A stretch of DNA of 64,000 nucleotides from IMG/VR virus record IMGVR_UViG_3300035698_035310, positions 248,001 to 312,000 of that record; one strand, written 5' to 3'. Both the position numbers and the translations under genes were made by a program. The notes beneath the pieces were generated by a model. That model did not search any database and was not told the origin of the DNA. It worked only from the letters and a program-made list of their open reading frames with translations. Below, in pieces: positions 28,137 through 60,556 of the stretch. Position 1 is the first letter of the stretch, and the number at the start of each line of letters is the position of its first letter.

Positions 28137-28430
28137 ATGGGCAAATTAATAAGTTTTCATGATAATCCAGTAACAAGTTTAAAAAAAGAATTGATCGAAA
28201 CAGAAGAAAAATTAAAAATTGCCCAACATGAGTTATCGTTTTTTAAAAGTATATATTCTACAACGCATTCAATTGGTGATTTAATAAAATTGCAGTTGGC
28301 GGATTTATCACAAAATGTAATGACGCATCAAGGACATCTTAAAATGGTTCAAGAAAATATAAATGCAATCAGAGTTAAGTTGGAAAACCTTGAAGAAATG
28401 AAGAATAGAGTAAAAATGATTGATGAATAA
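28137..28430 (+). CDS. coiled-coil hypothetical protein
   Basis: ORF followed by terminator 28432-28462. Confidence 0.6.
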   Translation: MGKLISFHDNPVTSLKKELIETEEKLKIAQHELSFFKSIYSTTHSIGDLIKLQLADLSQNVMTHQGHLKMVQENINAIRVKLENLEEMKNRVKMIDE

Positions 28431-28509
28431 CAAAAAATCCACCCTGCGAGGGTGGATTTTTTGTCTCTAATAATAAATAATAGTAGGTTTTTATTTAGAG
28501 GAATAAAAA

Positions 28510-53313: not shown

Positions 53314-54414
53314 ATGCAAGTAGATATGCATTTTTATGGAGTTTTTTGTATGGCTCGTGCAGCGGGAATGAACCGCGAAGCAGCTAAAACAATAGCATAT
53401 GCCTCACAATACGTTGACGATTCTAACCTTACTGAAACCAATACTCACGATAATGGTGGTAAAATAATATCTGAAGCAACTGCCCATCACACCACCGATA
53501 TTAAAAATATAAATCATAACGATCAACGTTATATATGGGTTCCATTTCATTTTTATCCAAGCGGGGTTGGTGTGAAATTCACTGACAAATTAGTTTGTCA
53601 AAAAGATTCAACATCTGTTAACGAAATGGTTGATAACCATATCAACCAAGACAAATCCTACATATTGGAATTAATGGGAATTGCGGCACACGTATATGCT
53701 GACACGTTTTCACATTATGGTTTCTCTGGCGTTAGTTCCAGAAGTAATAGAGTGGTAGGTGAAACCATAAAATTGTATGGATTGCCACCAACACTTGAAG
53801 CCCTTTTAGGTAAAAAAGTAGCAAGATGGTTTGGTCGTTACGGTAAACAGGGTGGATTGATGTCTAATATTAGAACATTGATTAGTGATGGAGCAGAACT
53901 TGCAACTGGCGCATTAGGTCATGGCGGGGTATCTATATATCCAGACCAGCCATATTTAAAATGGGAATTTGAATACGAATTCAAAAATCCAAATCGTAAC
54001 GATTATTCAGAACGTGATAATCAAGTGACATTTTTAGAAGCATGTGTTAAACTATATGAAATGTTTACCAAATTTTTAAATGCGCACCCCGAATATAAAG
54101 AAGATGGAGTTCGAATAGAAATAGAAAAAATAATACCACATCTAAAGGAAATACTAAAAACTGAAGGTGGTAAAGATGAACGAATGGAAAAATGGAAAAA
54201 ATACGCCGCAGATAATTTATTATATAATGGTGATGGAGAAATAGACACTTATGATTCAGAAGATTGGCATAATCAATATGAAGATTTTTCTAAGTTGACA
54301 AACCATGACGAATTTGCTAATATGAACATATACAAATTCTTCCAAGCCGCAAGTTATCATAAACATACGGTGTTGAGAGAATTATTACCGAAACATGGGA
54401 TAATTGTTATATGA
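53314..54414 (+). CDS. DUF6765-like metal-dependent protein
   Basis: MQ.D.H.YG....ARAAG......IAYASQYVDD, W.PFHF.P, G...H.YADTFSH.GF, GH. Confidence 0.65.
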   Translation: MQVDMHFYGVFCMARAAGMNREAAKTIAYASQYVDDSNLTETNTHDNGGKIISEATAHHTTDIKNINHNDQRYIWVPFHFYPSGVGVKFTDKLVCQKDSTSVNEMVDNHINQDKSYILELMGIAAHVYADTFSHYGFSGVSSRSNRVVGETIKLYGLPPTLEALLGKKVARWFGRYGKQGGLMSNIRTLISDGAELATGALGHGGVSIYPDQPYLKWEFEYEFKNPNRNDYSERDNQVTFLEACVKLYEMFTKFLNAHPEYKEDGVRIEIEKIIPHLKEILKTEGGKDERMEKWKKYAADNLLYNGDGEIDTYDSEDWHNQYEDFSKLTNHDEFANMNIYKFFQAASYHKHTVLRELLPKHGIIVI

Positions 54415-54872
54415 TTAATGCAGAACCAATGACTGAGAAAAGTTGGATTTTATATGAAAAAACAACTCGTAAAGGATTGATGCGACTAACGAACGATGAA
54501 GAATATACAATATTAGGTGGACCAAATGCTGGCAAATATCCAGATTTAAAATCATTAACTGATAAATTAGGTGAAGTTACATTTGGAAAAATAAAAGCAT
54601 CCGCCGTTCAAGAAAAAGAAATAGTCGGTGAATATCCGATAAAACATGATACATATCATGAAGTAGAATCGATAGATTCACTTAGTTTATATACGAAAAA
54701 AGAAGGCAGTAAAGACGTATATGCTGCTGGATATTTTAGTGTAAACAGTAAAGGCAAATGGCAGACGTCATTCAGCCCCCGTTATAAGTCACTAGAAGAT
54801 AATGAATATCATGGCCCATTCAAATCTAAAATGGAAGCAGATCAAGAAACCAAAATGGAAAATAATAAATGA
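54411..54872 (+). CDS. hypothetical phage protein
   Basis: LYTK...S....AAGY.....W..SF.P....L....Y.GPFK. Confidence 0.7.
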   Translation: MINAEPMTEKSWILYEKTTRKGLMRLTNDEEYTILGGPNAGKYPDLKSLTDKLGEVTFGKIKASAVQEKEIVGEYPIKHDTYHEVESIDSLSLYTKKEGSKDVYAAGYFSVNSKGKWQTSFSPRYKSLEDNEYHGPFKSKMEADQETKMENNK

Positions 54873-55099
54873 GTGCAGTAGAAACATTTATGGCTAAAAC
54901 CACTGCTGCAACCAAAGCACGTAGCAAAGACATTCGCATTTCTTTACAAGAAGCACAATTATTGTCATCTGAACTTGCATCCATGTTGGCAAAAGAAAAT
55001 AAATTACTTAGTAAGATAGTTACGTTACAAGACAATATAACCGTTGTTGCCCCAACGCCAACTGGCGACATGGTGATGGACGGAGGGTCGTTTAAATAA
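54869..55099 (+). CDS. hypothetical phage protein
   Basis: C-terminal MDGGSF. Confidence 0.65.
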   Translation: MSAVETFMAKTTAATKARSKDIRISLQEAQLLSSELASMLAKENKLLSKIVTLQDNITVVAPTPTGDMVMDGGSFK

Positions 55100-55112
55100 T
55101 AGGAGATCACAA

Positions 55113-55310
55113 GTGCCAAAATATCAAGTAAATGTATATGAAACATTTCGCGTTAAACATGCCGCTGTTGTAGAAGCAGATAATGAACAAGATGCAATAA
55201 CCAAATTACATAAAGATGAATACAAAATATTTGAGAAAGGAAACTCTGATCATTATGAACCAGTATTCGAAGTTGATACCTCAAGTATAATTGAGAATGA
55301 CCTCCTATGA
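55113..55310 (+). CDS. small hypothetical protein
   Basis: AGGAG SD, GTG start; V.A..E..A motif. Confidence 0.6.
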   Translation: MPKYQVNVYETFRVKHAAVVEADNEQDAITKLHKDEYKIFEKGNSDHYEPVFEVDTSSIIENDLL

Positions 55311-55391
55311 CCTATAAAATAAATCAACCACATATACCCTTTATCATACCCATGCCGGGGAGAGCCCGGCTCATGATAAAGGAGATTATAT

Positions 55392-55679
55392 ATGTATCAA
55401 GAGAAAAAACTCGAAAGAAGAAGACGTGACTACTTAAGAATGAAAGAACGTGCTAGACACGTTCAAGCCCGTTGGTGGGATACCCATCACACTGATCCTG
55501 ACTTACATGACGCTGCAAGTAAGTTAGCCAACACTTTAAAATTATGTTCATGTTCATTGTGTGGAAACCCACGCCGTGATAATGTTTATGGCGATACATT
55601 AACGATGCAAGAATTAAAAGCACTGGATGATTCAAAAGATCAGTTAAAATGTTTTTTAGAAGAAACGCTTGACATATAA
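55392..55679 (+). CDS. small basic Zn-ribbon-like protein (CSC..CGNPR)
   Basis: Arg-rich N-terminus, CSCSLCGNPRR...T.QE; structured leader 55340-55380. Confidence 0.7.
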   Translation: MYQEKKLERRRRDYLRMKERARHVQARWWDTHHTDPDLHDAASKLANTLKLCSCSLCGNPRRDNVYGDTLTMQELKALDDSKDQLKCFLEETLDI

Positions 55680-55744
55680 ATATCATGTGTTATATTGTAT
55701 AAATAAGTTTAACGAATTAACCACTATTCAAGAAAGGAAATATT

Positions 55745-56170
55745 ATGTTGTAGATTAATACTGCTACCAAAGACGAAACCTTTGATCCCATGATGGATCA
55801 AACATTGCGCATGTATGCGATTGAGCGCGGTGATTTGGATATGACAAGAGGGAAGTGTTCTTCTCAAACAGGTCATGCATACAAACTTCTAACAAAAAAT
55901 GTGGTAGAGAATAACCCAACACTATCGAACGAATACTTCGATGATGGCATGGGAACTAATGTCACACTTAAATCCAAAAATCTAAGTCAACTTGAACGTG
56001 CCTATGACAATGCATTGGACGCGGGGCTTCCTTGTGTTTTAATCACTGACGAAGGGCATATAATGCCGCCACACTTCGATGGTGAACCTATTGTCACGGT
56101 TATAGGCATTGGCCCATGTAGGCGTGCCGAAGTTCATCACATCACCAAAAAATTTAACTGTGTAAAATAA
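55745..56170 (+). CDS. peptidyl-tRNA hydrolase (Pth2 type) with in-frame TAG at codon 3
   Basis: R.DL.M..GK...Q..HA, V.LK, GLP...I.D.G, TV.GIGP; SD AAGGA precedes ATG TTG TAG ATT... in frame with track ORF 55790. Confidence 0.8.
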
Positions 56171-56182
56171 AGGAGATATAAA

Positions 56183-56569
56183 ATGACAAATCAAACAACC
56201 ACCGAGACATATTGGATTTTTAAATACACGAATAAGGAAGGGTTCTATCAAGATCAAAGCAACAGTGGTTCACGTAACTATATCGAACCTAGAACAACGG
56301 ATATCGAATACGCTACAAAATATAGTGAATATACTATTGGTGATCATGCCATTTGGGTACGTAAGAAAAAAGAACCAATGAAACCAATTCAGATCAAGGA
56401 GACACGAACTTATCAACAAGAAGAACTTGGCGAAGAGGCACTAGGATATATTGCTACTGAAGAACTGAAACAAGCAAGCCGTGCAGAGAAAAATGCTATT
56501 CAACGACGCGAACAAGAGAGAAAAGAATATGAGCGTTTACAGAAACTATTTGAAGAAGAAGGAGAATAA
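56183..56569 (+). CDS. hypothetical protein with C-terminal EYERL coil
   Basis: AGGAG SD; KEYERLQKLFE. Confidence 0.7.
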   Translation: MTNQTTTETYWIFKYTNKEGFYQDQSNSGSRNYIEPRTTDIEYATKYSEYTIGDHAIWVRKKKEPMKPIQIKETRTYQQEELGEEALGYIATEELKQASRAEKNAIQRREQERKEYERLQKLFEEEGE

Positions 56570-56571
56570 TT

Positions 56572-57006
56572 ATGAAATGGTTTGATAAAGAAGAATTATT
56601 TGATATCACAAAATCCAACCCAGAAGCAATTCGTGAGATTTGTCAATGGTTTAATGATCGATGTGATGAAATCCATAGCGAAGAGCGAGAAGTATCTATT
56701 GATGATAACAATGTTAATATTTCATATTCATGGGAAGATAATTTCCGAGGGTGCCATATGGGAACTGAAACAGAATATTTTGAAATCCCCAATGAGATTT
56801 TCTTTTCGGATTATTCACTAAGTGCTTGGCAGCGTGAAGAGGCTGATCGTATAAAAGAAATCGCTGCGAAGGAAAAAGAAGCCGAAGATAAAAAAAAGAG
56901 AACGCAAGCTAAACGCGATAAGACTCTTGCAACCAAGAAAAAAGAACAGAAAGACAAAGATGAATATGAACGATTGAAAGAAAAATATGAAGGAGAAAAA
57001 AAATGA
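56572..57006 (+). CDS. hypothetical protein with C-terminal EYERL coil
   Basis: AGGAG SD; DEYERLKEKYE. Confidence 0.7.
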   Translation: MKWFDKEELFDITKSNPEAIREICQWFNDRCDEIHSEEREVSIDDNNVNISYSWEDNFRGCHMGTETEYFEIPNEIFFSDYSLSAWQREEADRIKEIAAKEKEAEDKKKRTQAKRDKTLATKKKEQKDKDEYERLKEKYEGEKK

Positions 57007-57569
57007 CTATGTGTACAATGAGATTAGCGATGATTGCATGTGATCAAATGGAAGGATTATCCATTTTGCAACATGGCGAAAGCGTTGCTTCATATTATAA
57101 AGATTTGAAGTCTCACTTACAACACGGAACGGATTTAAAATATGAGTGGCGCATGCCTTCATGGATTAACAACCCGTTGATATTAAACAATTTGCTATCT
57201 GATGATATTATGGAAACGTATCACATTTATCATGATTGTGGAAAGCCAGTGTGTATTAAATGGGACGAAAATGGGAGACGACACTTTCCTAATCATGCTG
57301 AAGTGTCAAAACAAACTTGGTTAGAAAACGGTGGCGACCCTTAGATTGCTAAATTAATTGGTATGGATATGGATATTCATACTATCAAAGCAGACGGTGT
57401 AGAAGAATTTGCATCAAGGCCCGAAGCGATTAGTTTATTATTGACGGGTTTGTCGGAAGTTCATTCTAATGCATCAATGTTTGGTGGAATAGAATCGACG
57501 AGTTTTAAAATCAAATTTAAGCAGTTAGAAAAGCGTGGTAAGAAAATCTTAGCATTGCTTGAAAAATAA
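57003..57569 (+). CDS. HD-domain protein with in-frame TAG at codon 114
   Basis: QHG, YHDCGKP, HFPNHA..S, then GGDP*IAKLIGMDMDIH...EVHSNA; track ORFs 57003 and 57363 share one frame. Confidence 0.75.
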
Positions 57570-57625
57570 ACGGCACACGTGATACAGCCGGAACCAATGT
57601 ATCACTTTATATAAGGAGAAATATT

Positions 57626-57943
57626 ATGACTACATTTACTTTTAAGACTCGTAACGAATATCTTACACAACGCGCTGAATGGAAAGCAGATTATAAAGCA
57701 TTGAGCCAAACCATTCGTGATTTGAAAGGACAACGCAAACAGTATACATGGAAATATGTTCCAAAGGGCAAGAACATTAAAATGGGCGACAACCCACGAT
57801 ATGATTCTACTGCTGGTTGGAGTGCGGTTGCACTTAAATATAAGGCAACTAAAATGTTAGAAGACCTTGCTGAAGCTAAAATTGAGGCAGGTAAGCAACG
57901 TGAATATCGCATTGCTAACGAACAAGAAGCAGCAGCAGCGTAA
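57626..57943 (+). CDS. basic helical hypothetical protein
   Basis: F.TR.EYL..RAEWKA.YK.LS..IR.LK; AAGGAG SD; terminator 57953-57978. Confidence 0.75.
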   Translation: MTTFTFKTRNEYLTQRAEWKADYKALSQTIRDLKGQRKQYTWKYVPKGKNIKMGDNPRYDSTAGWSAVALKYKATKMLEDLAEAKIEAGKQREYRIANEQEAAAA

Positions 57944-57996
57944 CATATTAATGGGGGCCATAGTGCCCCCGTTTTTTTCAACATTAGGAGAACAAA

Positions 57997-58545
57997 ATGG
58001 CAACACTAAAAGAACACAAAGAGCAATTAGTAAAAATGAAACCATCTAACATTTGGACGGATGATGATTTAAAAAAACGTGCACAAAATAGAAAATCGTT
58101 ACACACGTAGTTTCCATATGTTATAACATATAAAGGCTATTATGGATTGCATGATACAATGGTCGATTGGTGCCGTGAACAATTTAGCGACATGTATGGC
58201 GAATGCGATTGGGATGATTGTGATTTGGGATGGGAAAAATGGCACGACAATATAGGGCTACAAGGTCAACTCGACAATGAATTATATGACGAAATATTAT
58301 TTGATAAAGGCAGCGAACTTCATTATTGGTGGCGCACATTAATTATTGAAACACATTACGACATAATAAAAACTGAATACTTTCCAACACAACCGGGCGA
58401 TCATTGCCATCAGGGAACATGGAGAAGTAATTTCGTAATTAAAACTGGATATGATTATGGATATCAAGATTATTGCTTCAAAAACGGCGAAGACGCGTTC
58501 TATTTCAAGATAATGTGGGACGAAGAAGTTTTTAAAAGAAATTGA
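57997..58545 (+). CDS. hypothetical protein (F....DA..FK..W family) with in-frame TAG at codon 38
   Basis: AGGAG SD + ATG 57997; ...KSLHT*FPYVITY... continues in frame into track ORF 58147. Confidence 0.65.
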
Positions 58546-58644
58546 TATTTTTTTATTGACTTGAATATAGTGTTAGTATATAGTGTATTCAAGTTCGGGC
58601 ACGTGCCCTAACTATTTTTATCATTACACAGGAGTATTATTATC

Positions 58645-58854
58645 ATGGCTAAATTGAAACTATCACAAAACCAACGCGTACTTTCTACGCTTAACAAAGT
58701 CGGCTCTATCACCAATGTCGCTGCACGTTCACGCGGTATTCAAAATCTTCGCGCACGAATTTGCGAGCTTCGCAACACTGGTGTCAAGATTAAAACTGAG
58801 CCATATGTTCGCAAAGACGGCGTCGTCGCTGCAAAATACATTCTTTCTGCATAA
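58645..58854 (+). CDS. winged helix-turn-helix protein
   Basis: SQ..RVL..L.....IT...A....I..L.ARI.ELR..G..I; terminator 58878-58911. Confidence 0.75.
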   Translation: MAKLKLSQNQRVLSTLNKVGSITNVAARSRGIQNLRARICELRNTGVKIKTEPYVRKDGVVAAKYILSA

Positions 58855-58979
58855 AAGCCTTTCGTTAAAGCATAAATTAAAAATAGGTAGCAGTTTGCTA
58901 CCTATTTTTTTGTCTTGACATATAACACTTATTACGTTAATATTAAACCCACAAATGATATTAATGAAAGGATGCTATT

Positions 58980-59453
58980 ATGGCTGAACAACCTGACGAT
59001 CAACCAAAAAAGAAGAAAAAACAAAAAAAACAAAAGATGAGCAAAAGCAGTTCTAATACTGTTGCACAGGTATATTTCAATGAGTCTGAACCAGAGTATC
59101 CGTTGACATTGCCACTGGAGATGCTTGTCCGTGCAAAAGCCATCTTAGATATGCATAACATCATAATGAAGCCATGGGTCACGCTTATAAGCCTTGGTAA
59201 GCACGCTATTGAAGCATGGACAATTGGCGGCGACCCAATCGATAAAAAATATTGGTGGATGGATCAATATATCGAATCTGTATGCAACATGATATGGTGT
59301 GACATTAATAGTAAATACTATAAAGAATGGTGTGATACAGGCATTCTATTGGATGTTCCATCATTGAATAAACGATCAAGAGGAAGTCCAGAAAGTGTTG
59401 CAGAACATTTTGCCGATGTCGCAGTTAAAGCGTTTATAGAGCCATACAAATAA
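58980..59453 (+). CDS. hypothetical protein
   Basis: Promoter and AAGGA SD. Confidence 0.65.
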   Translation: MAEQPDDQPKKKKKQKKQKMSKSSSNTVAQVYFNESEPEYPLTLPLEMLVRAKAILDMHNIIMKPWVTLISLGKHAIEAWTIGGDPIDKKYWWMDQYIESVCNMIWCDINSKYYKEWCDTGILLDVPSLNKRSRGSPESVAEHFADVAVKAFIEPYK

Positions 59454-59464
59454 TAAGGTAATAC

Positions 59465-60556
59465 ATGACAGATAAAACAAAAATAATGATTATTGGTGCT
59501 GGTAATATTGGTATTGCTATTGCATCAATGTTACTACACATCGACGCATATGAAATATCAATATCCGATAAACTTGACGCACTTTCTTCTGTGACGGCAT
59601 TGAAGCATCTTGGTGTGGCTAAAGTATTACTAGATGCATCAAGCGATGCACAATTAAGAGAAGTGTTGAAATCATATGATTATGTCATAAATGCGGGACC
59701 GTATCATTTGGCTTCCACAATAGCAATGGCTGCGATTAAAACAGAGACGCATTATTTCGATTTAACTGAAGATGTATTTCAAACTGATCGTATTAGATCA
59801 TTTGCTAGCATTGATTTAAAAACTGTATTAGTTCCTCAATGTGGATTGGCACCTGGGTATATTTCTATATTGGCTAACCATGTTGCACAACAATTCGATC
59901 AAGTGTGCGACGTTAAAATGAGAGTTGGTGCACTTCCAATAAATCCAACCAATGCATTGAAATATAATACATCGTGGTCTATTGATGGACTAATTAATGA
60001 ATATTTACATCCATGTAACGCAATAAAAAATGGAAAAATGACAGTAACAGAACCACTTGAAGGATATGAAACATTCGTATTAGACGGCGTTCAGTATGAA
60101 GCATTTAATACTAGTGGTGGATTGGGAACTATGTGTGAAACATGGAAAGGCAAAGTCGATTCTATGAGTTATAAAACAGTTCGATATCCAGGTCATAATT
60201 ATTTGATGAAATTTCTTATTGATGATATGAACATCGAGGAACAACAACTGAAAGATATGATGACCTCCGCAGTTCCATCCACTAGTCAGGATGTTGTGGT
60301 GATATTAGTTGAAGTAACTGGTATGAAAAATGGCAAACTTGTAACAAAAAATGAAACCAGAAAAATATATGGAAATCACGGATGGAGTGGTATACAACTA
60401 GCAACAGCATCTGGTGTATGCACAGTGGTAGAAATACATCGTCAGAATCTTATCCAAACAAGCGAGGGCGGATTTATTAAACAAGAAGATATAAATTATG
60501 ACGATTTCGTAACAATAAATCGAGCATATTTCAATAATGTCTACAACACTATTTGA
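59465..60556 (+). CDS. saccharopine dehydrogenase / lysine 6-dehydrogenase family protein
   Basis: GAG.IG Rossmann motif, HYFDLTED, PQCGLAPG, RVGALP, WS.DGLINEY, EAFNTSGG, YKT.RYPGH. Confidence 0.88.
   Translation: MTDKTKIMIIGAGNIGIAIASMLLHIDAYEISISDKLDALSSVTALKHLGVAKVLLDASSDAQLREVLKSYDYVINAGPYHLASTIAMAAIKTETHYFDLTEDVFQTDRIRSFASIDLKTVLVPQCGLAPGYISILANHVAQQFDQVCDVKMRVGALPINPTNALKYNTSWSIDGLINEYLHPCNAIKNGKMTVTEPLEGYETFVLDGVQYEAFNTSGGLGTMCETWKGKVDSMSYKTVRYPGHNYLMKFLIDDMNIEEQQLKDMMTSAVPSTSQDVVVILVEVTGMKNGKLVTKNETRKIYGNHGWSGIQLATASGVCTVVEIHRQNLIQTSEGGFIKQEDINYDDFVTINRAYFNNVYNTI

Follow-up and report, generated by a model that had tools for sequence, protein, structure and literature searches.

Results

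The HD gene and its neighbourhood

The 64,000-nucleotide stretch analysed here (the window) belongs to the genome of a giant phage from a salt lake, and the window features described are on the plus strand. The pth2 region opens with a leader at 55733-55753, in which AAAGGAA is followed by ATG TTG TAG (55745-55753), in frame with the PTH2 domain, and the coding region for Pth2 (peptidyl-tRNA hydrolase 2) after this TAG occupies 55754-56170. The Pfam PTH2 domain (PF01981, E 3e-18, 66.6 bits against a cut-off of 23) is complete from the internal ATG at 55790. Two ORFs of unknown function on the same strand (56183-56569 and 56572-57006, together 56183-57006), without a Pfam family, lie between Pth2 and the gene for an HD-superfamily protein.

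The HD gene starts with the ATG at 57003, which overlaps the TGA stop of the upstream ORF (ATGA) and is preceded by a Shine-Dalgarno-like AAGGAG (56990-56995) 7 nt before it. ORF 57003-57344 comprises 113 codons (57003-57341) and ends in TAG (57342-57344, codon 114), followed in the same frame by ATT GCT AAA TTA ATT GGT ATG and codons 115-188 (57345-57566) up to the TAA at 57567-57569, so that the read-through product is 188 aa. The first ATG after the TAG, at 57363-57365, is the start of a 68-aa second ORF, has no Shine-Dalgarno sequence and lies inside a predicted 11-bp hairpin (not significant against shuffles, z -1.6), and is thus unlikely to be an independent start.

The TAG is not an error of a single assembly. 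An ENA metagenome contig of 570,549 bp is 100% identical over window 54003-60344, TAG included, and a contig at depth 15.5 from a salt-lake run covers 56000-58500 with no differences, although these may all be the same phage population, and low-depth pieces from three other samples do not span the TAG. Megablast of the region against phage records gave no match.

One gene and a predicted HD fold across the stop

The PHROG profile phrog_14850, a phage protein family of unknown function, aligns across the stop in a single stretch (residues 9-186 against profile positions 89-266 of 270, E 1.3e-59). We found 1,438 homologues, nearly all uninterrupted, and over 1,400 of them are single proteins of about 177-210 aa. 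Gln was placed at the TAG only as a reading device for the searches and the fold. Pfam, NCBIfam and PADLOC assigned no family to the window protein itself (no Pfam hit at E <= 1), while a member of the family (P0092) passes the Pfam HD model (PF01966) with 27.4 bits against a cut-off of 22 and another (P0089) is sub-threshold with the HDIG model.

The AF2 model of the read-through protein (pLDDT 96.9) shows an all-helical HD-superfamily fold, with helices 3-12, 21-41, 67-76 and 98-108 before the stop. The best solved match is the HD region of a class-II tRNA CC-adding enzyme (3WFO, Z 13.1, rmsd 3.0 A over 158 residues), followed by other HD proteins (PgpH, PhnZ and GppA/PPX at Z 9-10; with YfbR, the range is Z 7.5-10). 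A profile comparison (E 9e-4) aligned the HDxGKP motif with that of the CC-adding enzyme.

Conserved residues lie on both sides of the stop. Codons 1-113 carry H24-G25, the Y-H77-D78-C-G-K-P motif and H98, and codons 115-188 carry L118, D122, M123, H126, E152, H154, N156 and F160-G161-G162. H24, H77-D78 and D122, the conserved H...HD...D metal-binding pattern, are invariant in 52 sequences, along with H98, H126 and H154. The six codons between the TAG and the next ATG encode family-conserved residues, including L118 at 90% or more. The TAG itself aligns with a variable loop position (Q 18, E 15, T 5, A 4, V 3 and others in 51 homologues) at the N-terminal end of predicted helix 113-120. The part after the TAG is as conserved as in uninterrupted homologues (76% identity to consensus against 76 +/- 5% in the others), the C/N conservation ratio being 1.20 against 1.23 +/- 0.12, and no further stops or frameshifts were detected after it.

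Genetic code and suppressor tRNAs of the phage

The genome encodes two tRNAs with anticodon CUA, both clean canonical cloverleaves with encoded CCA, at genome positions 28369-28446 and 221822-221895, outside the window and 83 kb or more from the HD gene. Similarity to other tRNAs and acceptor-stem features did not settle which amino acid they carry. The genome keeps the standard code: coding density is 88% under table 11, TAG ends 61 of 563 ORFs, and there is no excess of in-frame continuation after TAG. Of 11 candidate sites most are ordinary gene junctions, and only the HD gene shows coding signal on both sides of a TAG without a new SD plus ATG. A scan for more genes with an SD-ATG-short leader-TAG start found only Pth2 convincingly, and the counts for TAG were no higher than for the TAA and TGA controls. 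No phage release factor was found, and an RNA structure stimulating read-through after the TAG is not supported (z -0.6 to -1.7).

In-frame amber codons and tRNA-CUA in related phages

Six GAP32-like phages all keep a TAG at codon 47 of the same gene, with purifying selection on both sides. dS is 0.3-1.25 and dN/dS 0.03-0.17 on both sides (the C-terminal part; three closely related pairs give dS 0.12-0.14 or dN/dS 0 or 0.45 on the 46-codon N-terminal part, from very few changes). In the four of the six records that were inspected, a tRNA-CUA lies 2-3.5 kb downstream.

In IMG/VR loci of the family, a tRNA-CUA lies within 3 kb of the gene in 38 of 80 loci, or 27 of 57 clusters. Of 172 flanking tRNAs 49 are CUA, and the nearest tRNA is CUA in 32 of 47 loci; all are on the same strand as the gene. 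The nearest upstream in-frame stop is TAG in 71 of 80 loci, or 49 of 57 clusters (p about 2e-16 against one third), and it usually follows a 2-8-codon ATG leader, typically ATG NNN TAG. The same holds in the cultured phages RsoM2USA, XacN1 and RAS14. Every in-frame stop seen in the family is TAG, never TAA or TGA. The early TAG of the window Pth2 gene belongs to the same leader type, which occurs in 20 of 21 metagenomic Pth2 loci and in phages RsoM2USA, Arash, ME3 and pT24. The HD family is fused or adjacent to Pth2, suggesting a functional link. One related contig (L029, 97% complete) has an early TAG and an internal TAG in its HD gene, but no tRNA-CUA was found among its 37 tRNAs, only a tRNA-UCA, so a phage-encoded CUA tRNA is not always at hand.

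The HD and Pth2 genes of the window share TAG ATT (ATG TTG TAG ATT at 55745-55756 in Pth2). Within this genome the context alone is unremarkable, since 4 of 61 TAG-ended ORFs are followed by ATT, and it is weak evidence here; across phages, however, ATT is the commonest codon after the TAG.

Discussion

The original prediction that the two ORFs form a complete HD fold which can only be made by read-through, possibly acting on RNA/tRNA ends, is supported by our results. Homologues are one gene and not two, the TAG is present in more than one assembly, and the relationship to Pth2 and to tRNA-CUA genes is in agreement with the proposed tRNA link. The prediction was made without knowledge of the two suppressor tRNAs and of the in-frame TAG that is a near-universal feature of this family and of its Pth2 partner in phages.

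We suggest that 57003-57569 is one functional gene for a 188-aa HD-superfamily metal-dependent phosphohydrolase (PHROG 14850), which most likely works on tRNA 3' ends together with the nearby Pth2, a substrate inferred only from fold and gene context. Codon 114 would be an amber codon acting as a translational gate: ribosomes that terminate there make an incomplete 113-aa fragment, while ribosomes that decode UAG with one of the two phage tRNA-CUA, inserting an amino acid for which Gln is only a guess, make the full enzyme. The enzyme would therefore be produced only when, and in proportion as, the suppressor tRNA is active, and the same gate would sit at codon 3 of Pth2. We give this reading a probability of about 0.7; charging of the tRNA-CUA and decoding of this TAG are inferred, translation through the stop has not been shown experimentally (no RNA run contains the sequence), and the TAG at codon 114 is known only from this phage population, so that selection on it cannot be measured directly.

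A recent nonsense mutation, by which a CAG or GAG codon became TAG in a young pseudogene making only the 113-aa fragment, is unlikely, although a very recent mutation cannot be excluded. The aligned position is Q or E in 33 of 51 homologues, a single base change would suffice, and the L029 contig shows that TAGs can occur without a detectable tRNA-CUA. However, there is no relaxation after the stop, all family-invariant residues are retained, the genome has two suppressor tRNAs, and all stops seen in the family are TAG. The family almost always carries one in-frame TAG, this copy lacks the usual early one, and an internal TAG is stably maintained under purifying selection in the GAP32 clade.

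It is equally doubtful that read-through occurs without the phage tRNA-CUA, by leaky termination, a near-cognate host tRNA or a host suppressor, with the TAG merely setting a low expression level. The L029 contig, the distance of the tRNA-CUA genes in this genome and the purine after the TAG, a context that may favour read-through in E. coli, are consistent with this possibility. Against it, no significant downstream RNA structure was found, and the linkage of the family to tRNA-CUA genes is far above their share of phage tRNA sets (28% of flanking tRNAs against 2 of 32 here, 1 of 44 in RsoM2USA and 2 of 29 in XacN1).

A split enzyme, assembled from two separately translated pieces after re-initiation at ATG 57363, is less likely still. 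An ATG does lie 6 codons after the TAG, and GenBank annotators treat the GAP32-type homologues as two genes, but this ATG has no Shine-Dalgarno sequence and lies in the predicted hairpin stem, and the conserved residues of codons 115-120 would be lost. In GAP32-like phages the HDCGKP motif lies after the TAG and before any annotated or ATG start, yet it is strictly conserved, and in many Pth2 and HD leaders no start codon follows the TAG before the conserved domain. The in-frame relation is kept in 86-89% of loci, which separate initiation would not require. Genome-wide reassignment of TAG (code 15-like or pyrrolysine) is rejected by the coding density, by the TAG-ended ORFs with ordinary SD plus ATG junctions after them, by the canonical tRNA cloverleaves and by the absence of a PylS over the cut-off (the one weak hit is a HisRS-like class-II core), the ARAGORN label 'Pyl' for the CUA tRNAs reflecting only the anticodon.

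The CC-adding enzyme (PDB 3WFO-3WFS; PMC4810234) shares with the phage protein the HD(I/C)GKP...F.H segment at the profile level and probably a tRNA 3'-end context, but identity is only 16%, and the phage protein stands alone at about 180 aa, or is fused to Pth2, and has no nucleotidyltransferase head. TAG-recoded crAss-like, Lak and related phages (PMC10607447, PMC12386605) also combine a phage-encoded tRNA-CUA with in-frame TAG codons, with a proposed role in the control of when genes are translated. In those phages dozens of genes carry many TAGs and table 11 gives broken genes genome-wide (41 ORFs in phAss-1), whereas here the code is standard and only one or two genes of one module carry a single TAG each. 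The Pth2 gene of jumbo phages and its association with tRNA genes are already known (PMC7824862, PMC5966550), but we found no mention in those papers of the early amber codon, the HD partner or the tRNA-CUA linkage.

Suppressor tRNAs are common in large phages that use the standard code, and their targets have been an open question. The authors of the XacN1 study (PMC5852040) read through 18 amber stops and found nothing, and those of the RsoM2USA study (PMC8504454) could only guess. Both phages carry this HD family, and we detected an early TAG in the HD gene of both, ATG AAG TAG in XacN1 and ATG AAA TCG TAG in RsoM2USA, and ATG TTG TAG in a Pth2-like gene of RsoM2USA. It is about as likely as not that many phages, mostly jumbo phages with a standard genetic code, carry a three-part translational switch, in which the key is a dedicated amber-suppressor tRNA and the lock is a single amber codon in a Pth2/HD tRNA-end hydrolase unit, usually at codon 3-9 and sometimes, as here, inside the HD domain. 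This unit would be the natural target of the suppressor tRNAs of jumbo phages, and it may form a feedback or feed-forward loop that couples peptidyl-tRNA and tRNA-end clean-up to the level of stop-codon suppression in the infected cell.

Several of the phages are in culture (GAP32, CBB, BF, RsoM2USA, XacN1, ME3, Arash and pT24). The results also suggest annotation of the widespread family PHROG 14850 as an HD phosphohydrolase probably linked to tRNA ends, and point to mis-annotated genes in many GenBank phage records. Gene callers miss the Pth2/HD unit because a two-codon leader or a split gene is never annotated.

The predicted HD hydrolase gene in its genomic setting

The 359,044-bp viral record is classed by IMG/VR as a provirus with a CheckV completeness of 94%, occurs in salt-lake metagenome runs, has 33-43% G+C and mostly plus-strand genes, and gave no megablast match to deposited phages. 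We detected that ORF 57003-57344, preceded by a good AAGGAG 7 nt upstream of its start and overlapping the stop of the preceding ORF, has 113 codons and ends in TAG at 57342-57344. The next codons are ATT GCT AAA TTA ATT GGT ATG, and the frame stays open to TAA at 57567-57569, giving a read-through product of 188 aa (TAG was read as Q only as a device). A gene encoding a 363-aa saccharopine-dehydrogenase-like protein (59465-60556; PF03435/PF16653 on the identical ENA locus), unusual for a phage, lies 2 kb downstream of the HD gene.

The TAG stands in more than one assembly. The ENA metagenome contig k141_202852 (ERZ27315719), at 570,549 bp much longer than the IMG/VR record, is identical over 6,342 bp (window 54003-60344), TAG included, and a Logan contig at depth 15.5 shows no difference over 56000-58500. 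These are probably one phage population, and pieces from three other samples are identical where they lie but do not cross the TAG.

Family assignment and structural prediction

PHROG 14850 (unknown function) aligned with residues 9-186 in one stretch across the stop (E 1e-59), and each half alone also hit it. The word-based protein search found 1,438 relatives, nearly all of them single proteins of 177-210 aa. In an alignment of 52 sequences the invariant residues include H24, G25, H77, D78, G80, K81, P82 and H98 before the TAG, and D122, M123, H126, E152, H154, N156, F160, G161 and G162 after it. The AF2 model is very confident (pLDDT 96.9, pTM 0.91) and all-helical.

Structural comparison by VIA-align over 48,161 chains placed 3WFO residues 250-448 first (Z 13.1, rmsd 3.0 A, 158 residues); 3WFO is a class-II CC-adding tRNA nucleotidyltransferase (PMC4810234). 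Below it come HD proteins, namely PgpH, PhnZ, GppA/PPX, the HD domain of bacterial GlyRS beta, YfbR, SpoT and small alarmone hydrolases, and the Foldseek results agree. A profile built from the alignment of 52 matched the same PDB chains by sequence (E 9e-4), aligning yHDcGKP...F.H with fHDIGKP...F.H. One family member passes the Pfam HD model, although the window protein itself does not. So it is an HD-superfamily phosphohydrolase whose nearest solved relative is the HD region of a tRNA 3'-end enzyme.

Relationship to Pth2

Several relatives of about 320 aa are Pth2::HD fusions, and the two are also fused in Tenacibaculum phage pT24. In Bosea sp. RAC05 (CP016463.1, a 708,738-bp record) the bacterial copy of the unit reads tRNA with anticodon AAU, then PTH2, then HD, with no TAG; the PTH2 gene lies 14 bp upstream of the HD gene, and an RNA ligase gene (PF09414) lies 5 kb upstream. 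In the window a PTH2 gene (55790-56170) lies 0.8 kb upstream of the HD gene. Together, these fusions and adjacencies suggest that the HD protein acts with Pth2 on tRNA 3' ends, with the substrate being an inference.

Integrity of the gene across the TAG

The part after the TAG is 76% identical to the family consensus, against 76 +/- 5% for the 51 intact homologues, and the ratio of C-part to N-part conservation is 1.20 against 1.23 +/- 0.12 (rank 25 of 52). The TAG aligns with a variable position (Q 18, E 15, T 5, A 4, V 3, R 2, D 2, G 1, K 1), in a loop just before predicted helix 113-120. A very recent mutation cannot be excluded from this genome alone, but nothing suggests decay. Nothing suggests a separate second gene either: the six codons between the TAG and the next ATG encode family-conserved residues, and that ATG has no Shine-Dalgarno sequence and lies in a predicted hairpin, which is itself not significant.

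Genetic code and suppressor tRNAs

ARAGORN found 32 tRNAs in the genome, of which two have anticodon CUA, at genome positions 28369-28446 and 221822-221895, both outside the window. Both are regular cloverleaves with encoded CCA and short variable arms. The two genes are different, with discriminators A73 and G73, and among 50 distinct tRNA-CUA sequences next to HD/Pth2 genes in other phages both classes recur and often sit side by side, which hints at two different amino-acid identities. The gene directly after the second tRNA-CUA (genome 221916-222392) encodes an OGFr_N-family protein (PF04664, E 6e-13). A 199-aa HisRS-like class-II aminoacyl-tRNA synthetase core without an anticodon-binding domain (genome 38372-38971, outside the window; Pfam tRNA-synt_His, E 3e-14) lies inside the tRNA gene region, and a link to charging of the tRNA-CUA would be pure speculation.

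Under table 11 the coding density is 88% and TAG ends 61 of 563 ORFs, while in-frame continuation after TAG (8 of 61) is no more common than after TAA (55 of 357). The codon-usage scan detected 11 TAGs with coding signal on both sides, most of which are ordinary junctions with a Shine-Dalgarno sequence and ATG right after the stop, the HD gene being the clear exception. No PylS or release factor was found in the genome. So TAG is normally a stop here, and suppression can only be partial or gene-specific.

Internal amber codon in GAP32-like phages

The tblastn search against deposited phages gave 29 records, in 18 of which the match lies under two or three annotated genes (GAP32, CBB, BF, fHe-Yen9, XbC2, Kaldavass and the pEa_SNUABM phages). 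Six of these were read, and all six have TAG at codon 47 in the context GGA TAG GGC GA, the same frame and no indels. Pairwise dS on the C-terminal part is 0.3-1.25, with dN/dS 0.03-0.17 on both sides of the TAG in all but three closely related pairs, whose 46-codon N-terminal parts carry too few changes to estimate. The HDCGKP motif lies after the TAG and before any ATG, outside every annotated CDS, yet it is conserved. In the four of the six records inspected for it (GAP32, CBB, Kaldavass, BF), a tRNA-CUA lies 2-3.5 kb downstream. This shows that an internal amber codon in this very gene family can be a stable, selected state.

In-frame TAG and tRNA-CUA across the family

We analyzed eighty IMG/VR loci of the family and, since these are partly redundant, cluster-level counts (57 clusters at 80% identity) are given as well. 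Inside the domain the only in-frame stops are TAG, at codon 35 in locus L029 (IMGVR_UViG_3300026088_000010, 262.5 kb, 97% complete) and at codon 4 in locus L075. A tRNA-CUA lies within 3 kb in 38 loci, or 27 of 57 clusters, always on the strand of the gene; 49 of 172 flanking tRNAs are CUA, and it is the nearest tRNA in 32 of 47 loci. In whole phage tRNA sets it is only 2 of 32 here, 1 of 44 in RsoM2USA and 2 of 29 in XacN1. After CUA, the most frequent flanking tRNAs are tRNA-Thr (GGU 16, UGU 14, CGU 11, AGU 3 of 172), and tRNA-Thr genes also follow the first tRNA-CUA in the genome studied here.

An early TAG was found to precede the domain. The nearest in-frame stop upstream of the domain is TAG in 71 of 80 loci, or 49 of 57 clusters, while TGA accounts for 5 clusters and TAA for 3 (binomial p against one third about 2e-16). 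In 46 of the 49 clusters an ATG lies 2-12 codons before the TAG, most often as ATG NNN TAG. Cultured phages show the same: RsoM2USA has ATG AAA TCG TAG ATC, XacN1 has ATG AAG TAG ACC, and RAS14 has ATG AAG TAG ACC with no Met before the conserved motif. The segment between the TAG and the conserved Met corresponds to the first helix of the model (residues 3-12), which fits translation through the TAG.

Early amber codon in the Pth2 partner

In the window the Pth2 gene (55733-56170) starts with a strong Shine-Dalgarno sequence, AAAGGAA, followed by ATG TTG TAG ATT in frame with the PTH2 domain. In 20 of 21 IMG/VR Pth2 loci the nearest upstream in-frame stop is TAG after a short ATG leader, often with no ATG between it and the domain, and a tRNA-CUA lies within 3 kb in 11. 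The same holds for a Pth2-like gene of RsoM2USA (ATG TTG TAG ATT), Salmonella phage Arash (ATG CTG TAG), Acinetobacter phage ME3 (ATG ACT TAG ATT, with a tRNA-CTA 450 bp upstream) and pT24 (ATG AAA TAG, with Pth2 fused to HD). In GAP32-like phages Pth2 starts normally and the HD gene holds the TAG, while the window phage has a plain start and an internal TAG on its HD gene, plus the early TAG on Pth2. Thus, almost every phage copy of the Pth2/HD unit carries an amber codon, and only its position differs.

Proposed mechanism and relationship to known systems

The best-supported reading, inferred from sequence alone, is that codon 114 is decoded by the phage's tRNA-CUA in competition with RF1, so that the full HD enzyme would appear only when that tRNA is active, and otherwise a 113-aa fragment lacking D122, H126, E152 and H154 would be released. 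Against this reading, the tRNA-CUA genes are far from the HD gene in this genome. The L029 contig also speaks against it, since its HD gene has an early TAG and the second TAG at codon 35, but no tRNA-CUA was found among its 37 tRNA hits, although a tRNA-UCA (opal type) is present. The gating is possibly related to timing, dosage, coupling of peptidyl-tRNA and tRNA-end clean-up to the level of suppression, or enforced co-inheritance of tRNA and enzymes.

Phage suppressor tRNAs and TAG-recoded phages are known, as is PTH2 in jumbo phages and in phage tRNA arrays (PMC7824862, PMC5966550), and the XacN1 and RsoM2USA papers report tRNA-CUA without identified targets. The reading proposed here differs in that suppressor-tRNA read-through would be used as a gene-specific gate in standard-code phages. 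In the literature searched, which is not proof that it is unpublished, we found nothing on an amber-locked Pth2/HD unit or on the tRNA-CUA linkage of PHROG 14850.

Annotation of the unit in deposited phages

The HD and Pth2-like genes are annotated as truncated or split ORFs because of the TAG in the GenBank records JN882285, KU574722, KY630187, LT960552, OP292654, PQ464595, MG752970, AP018399, OP752703, OQ632216, KU935715 and LC168164 (for instance, GAP32_398/399, Arash gp84c (50 aa, 'peptidyl-tRNA hydrolase'), ME3_195, RsoM2USA_91, XacN1 ORF364 and BPT24_235).
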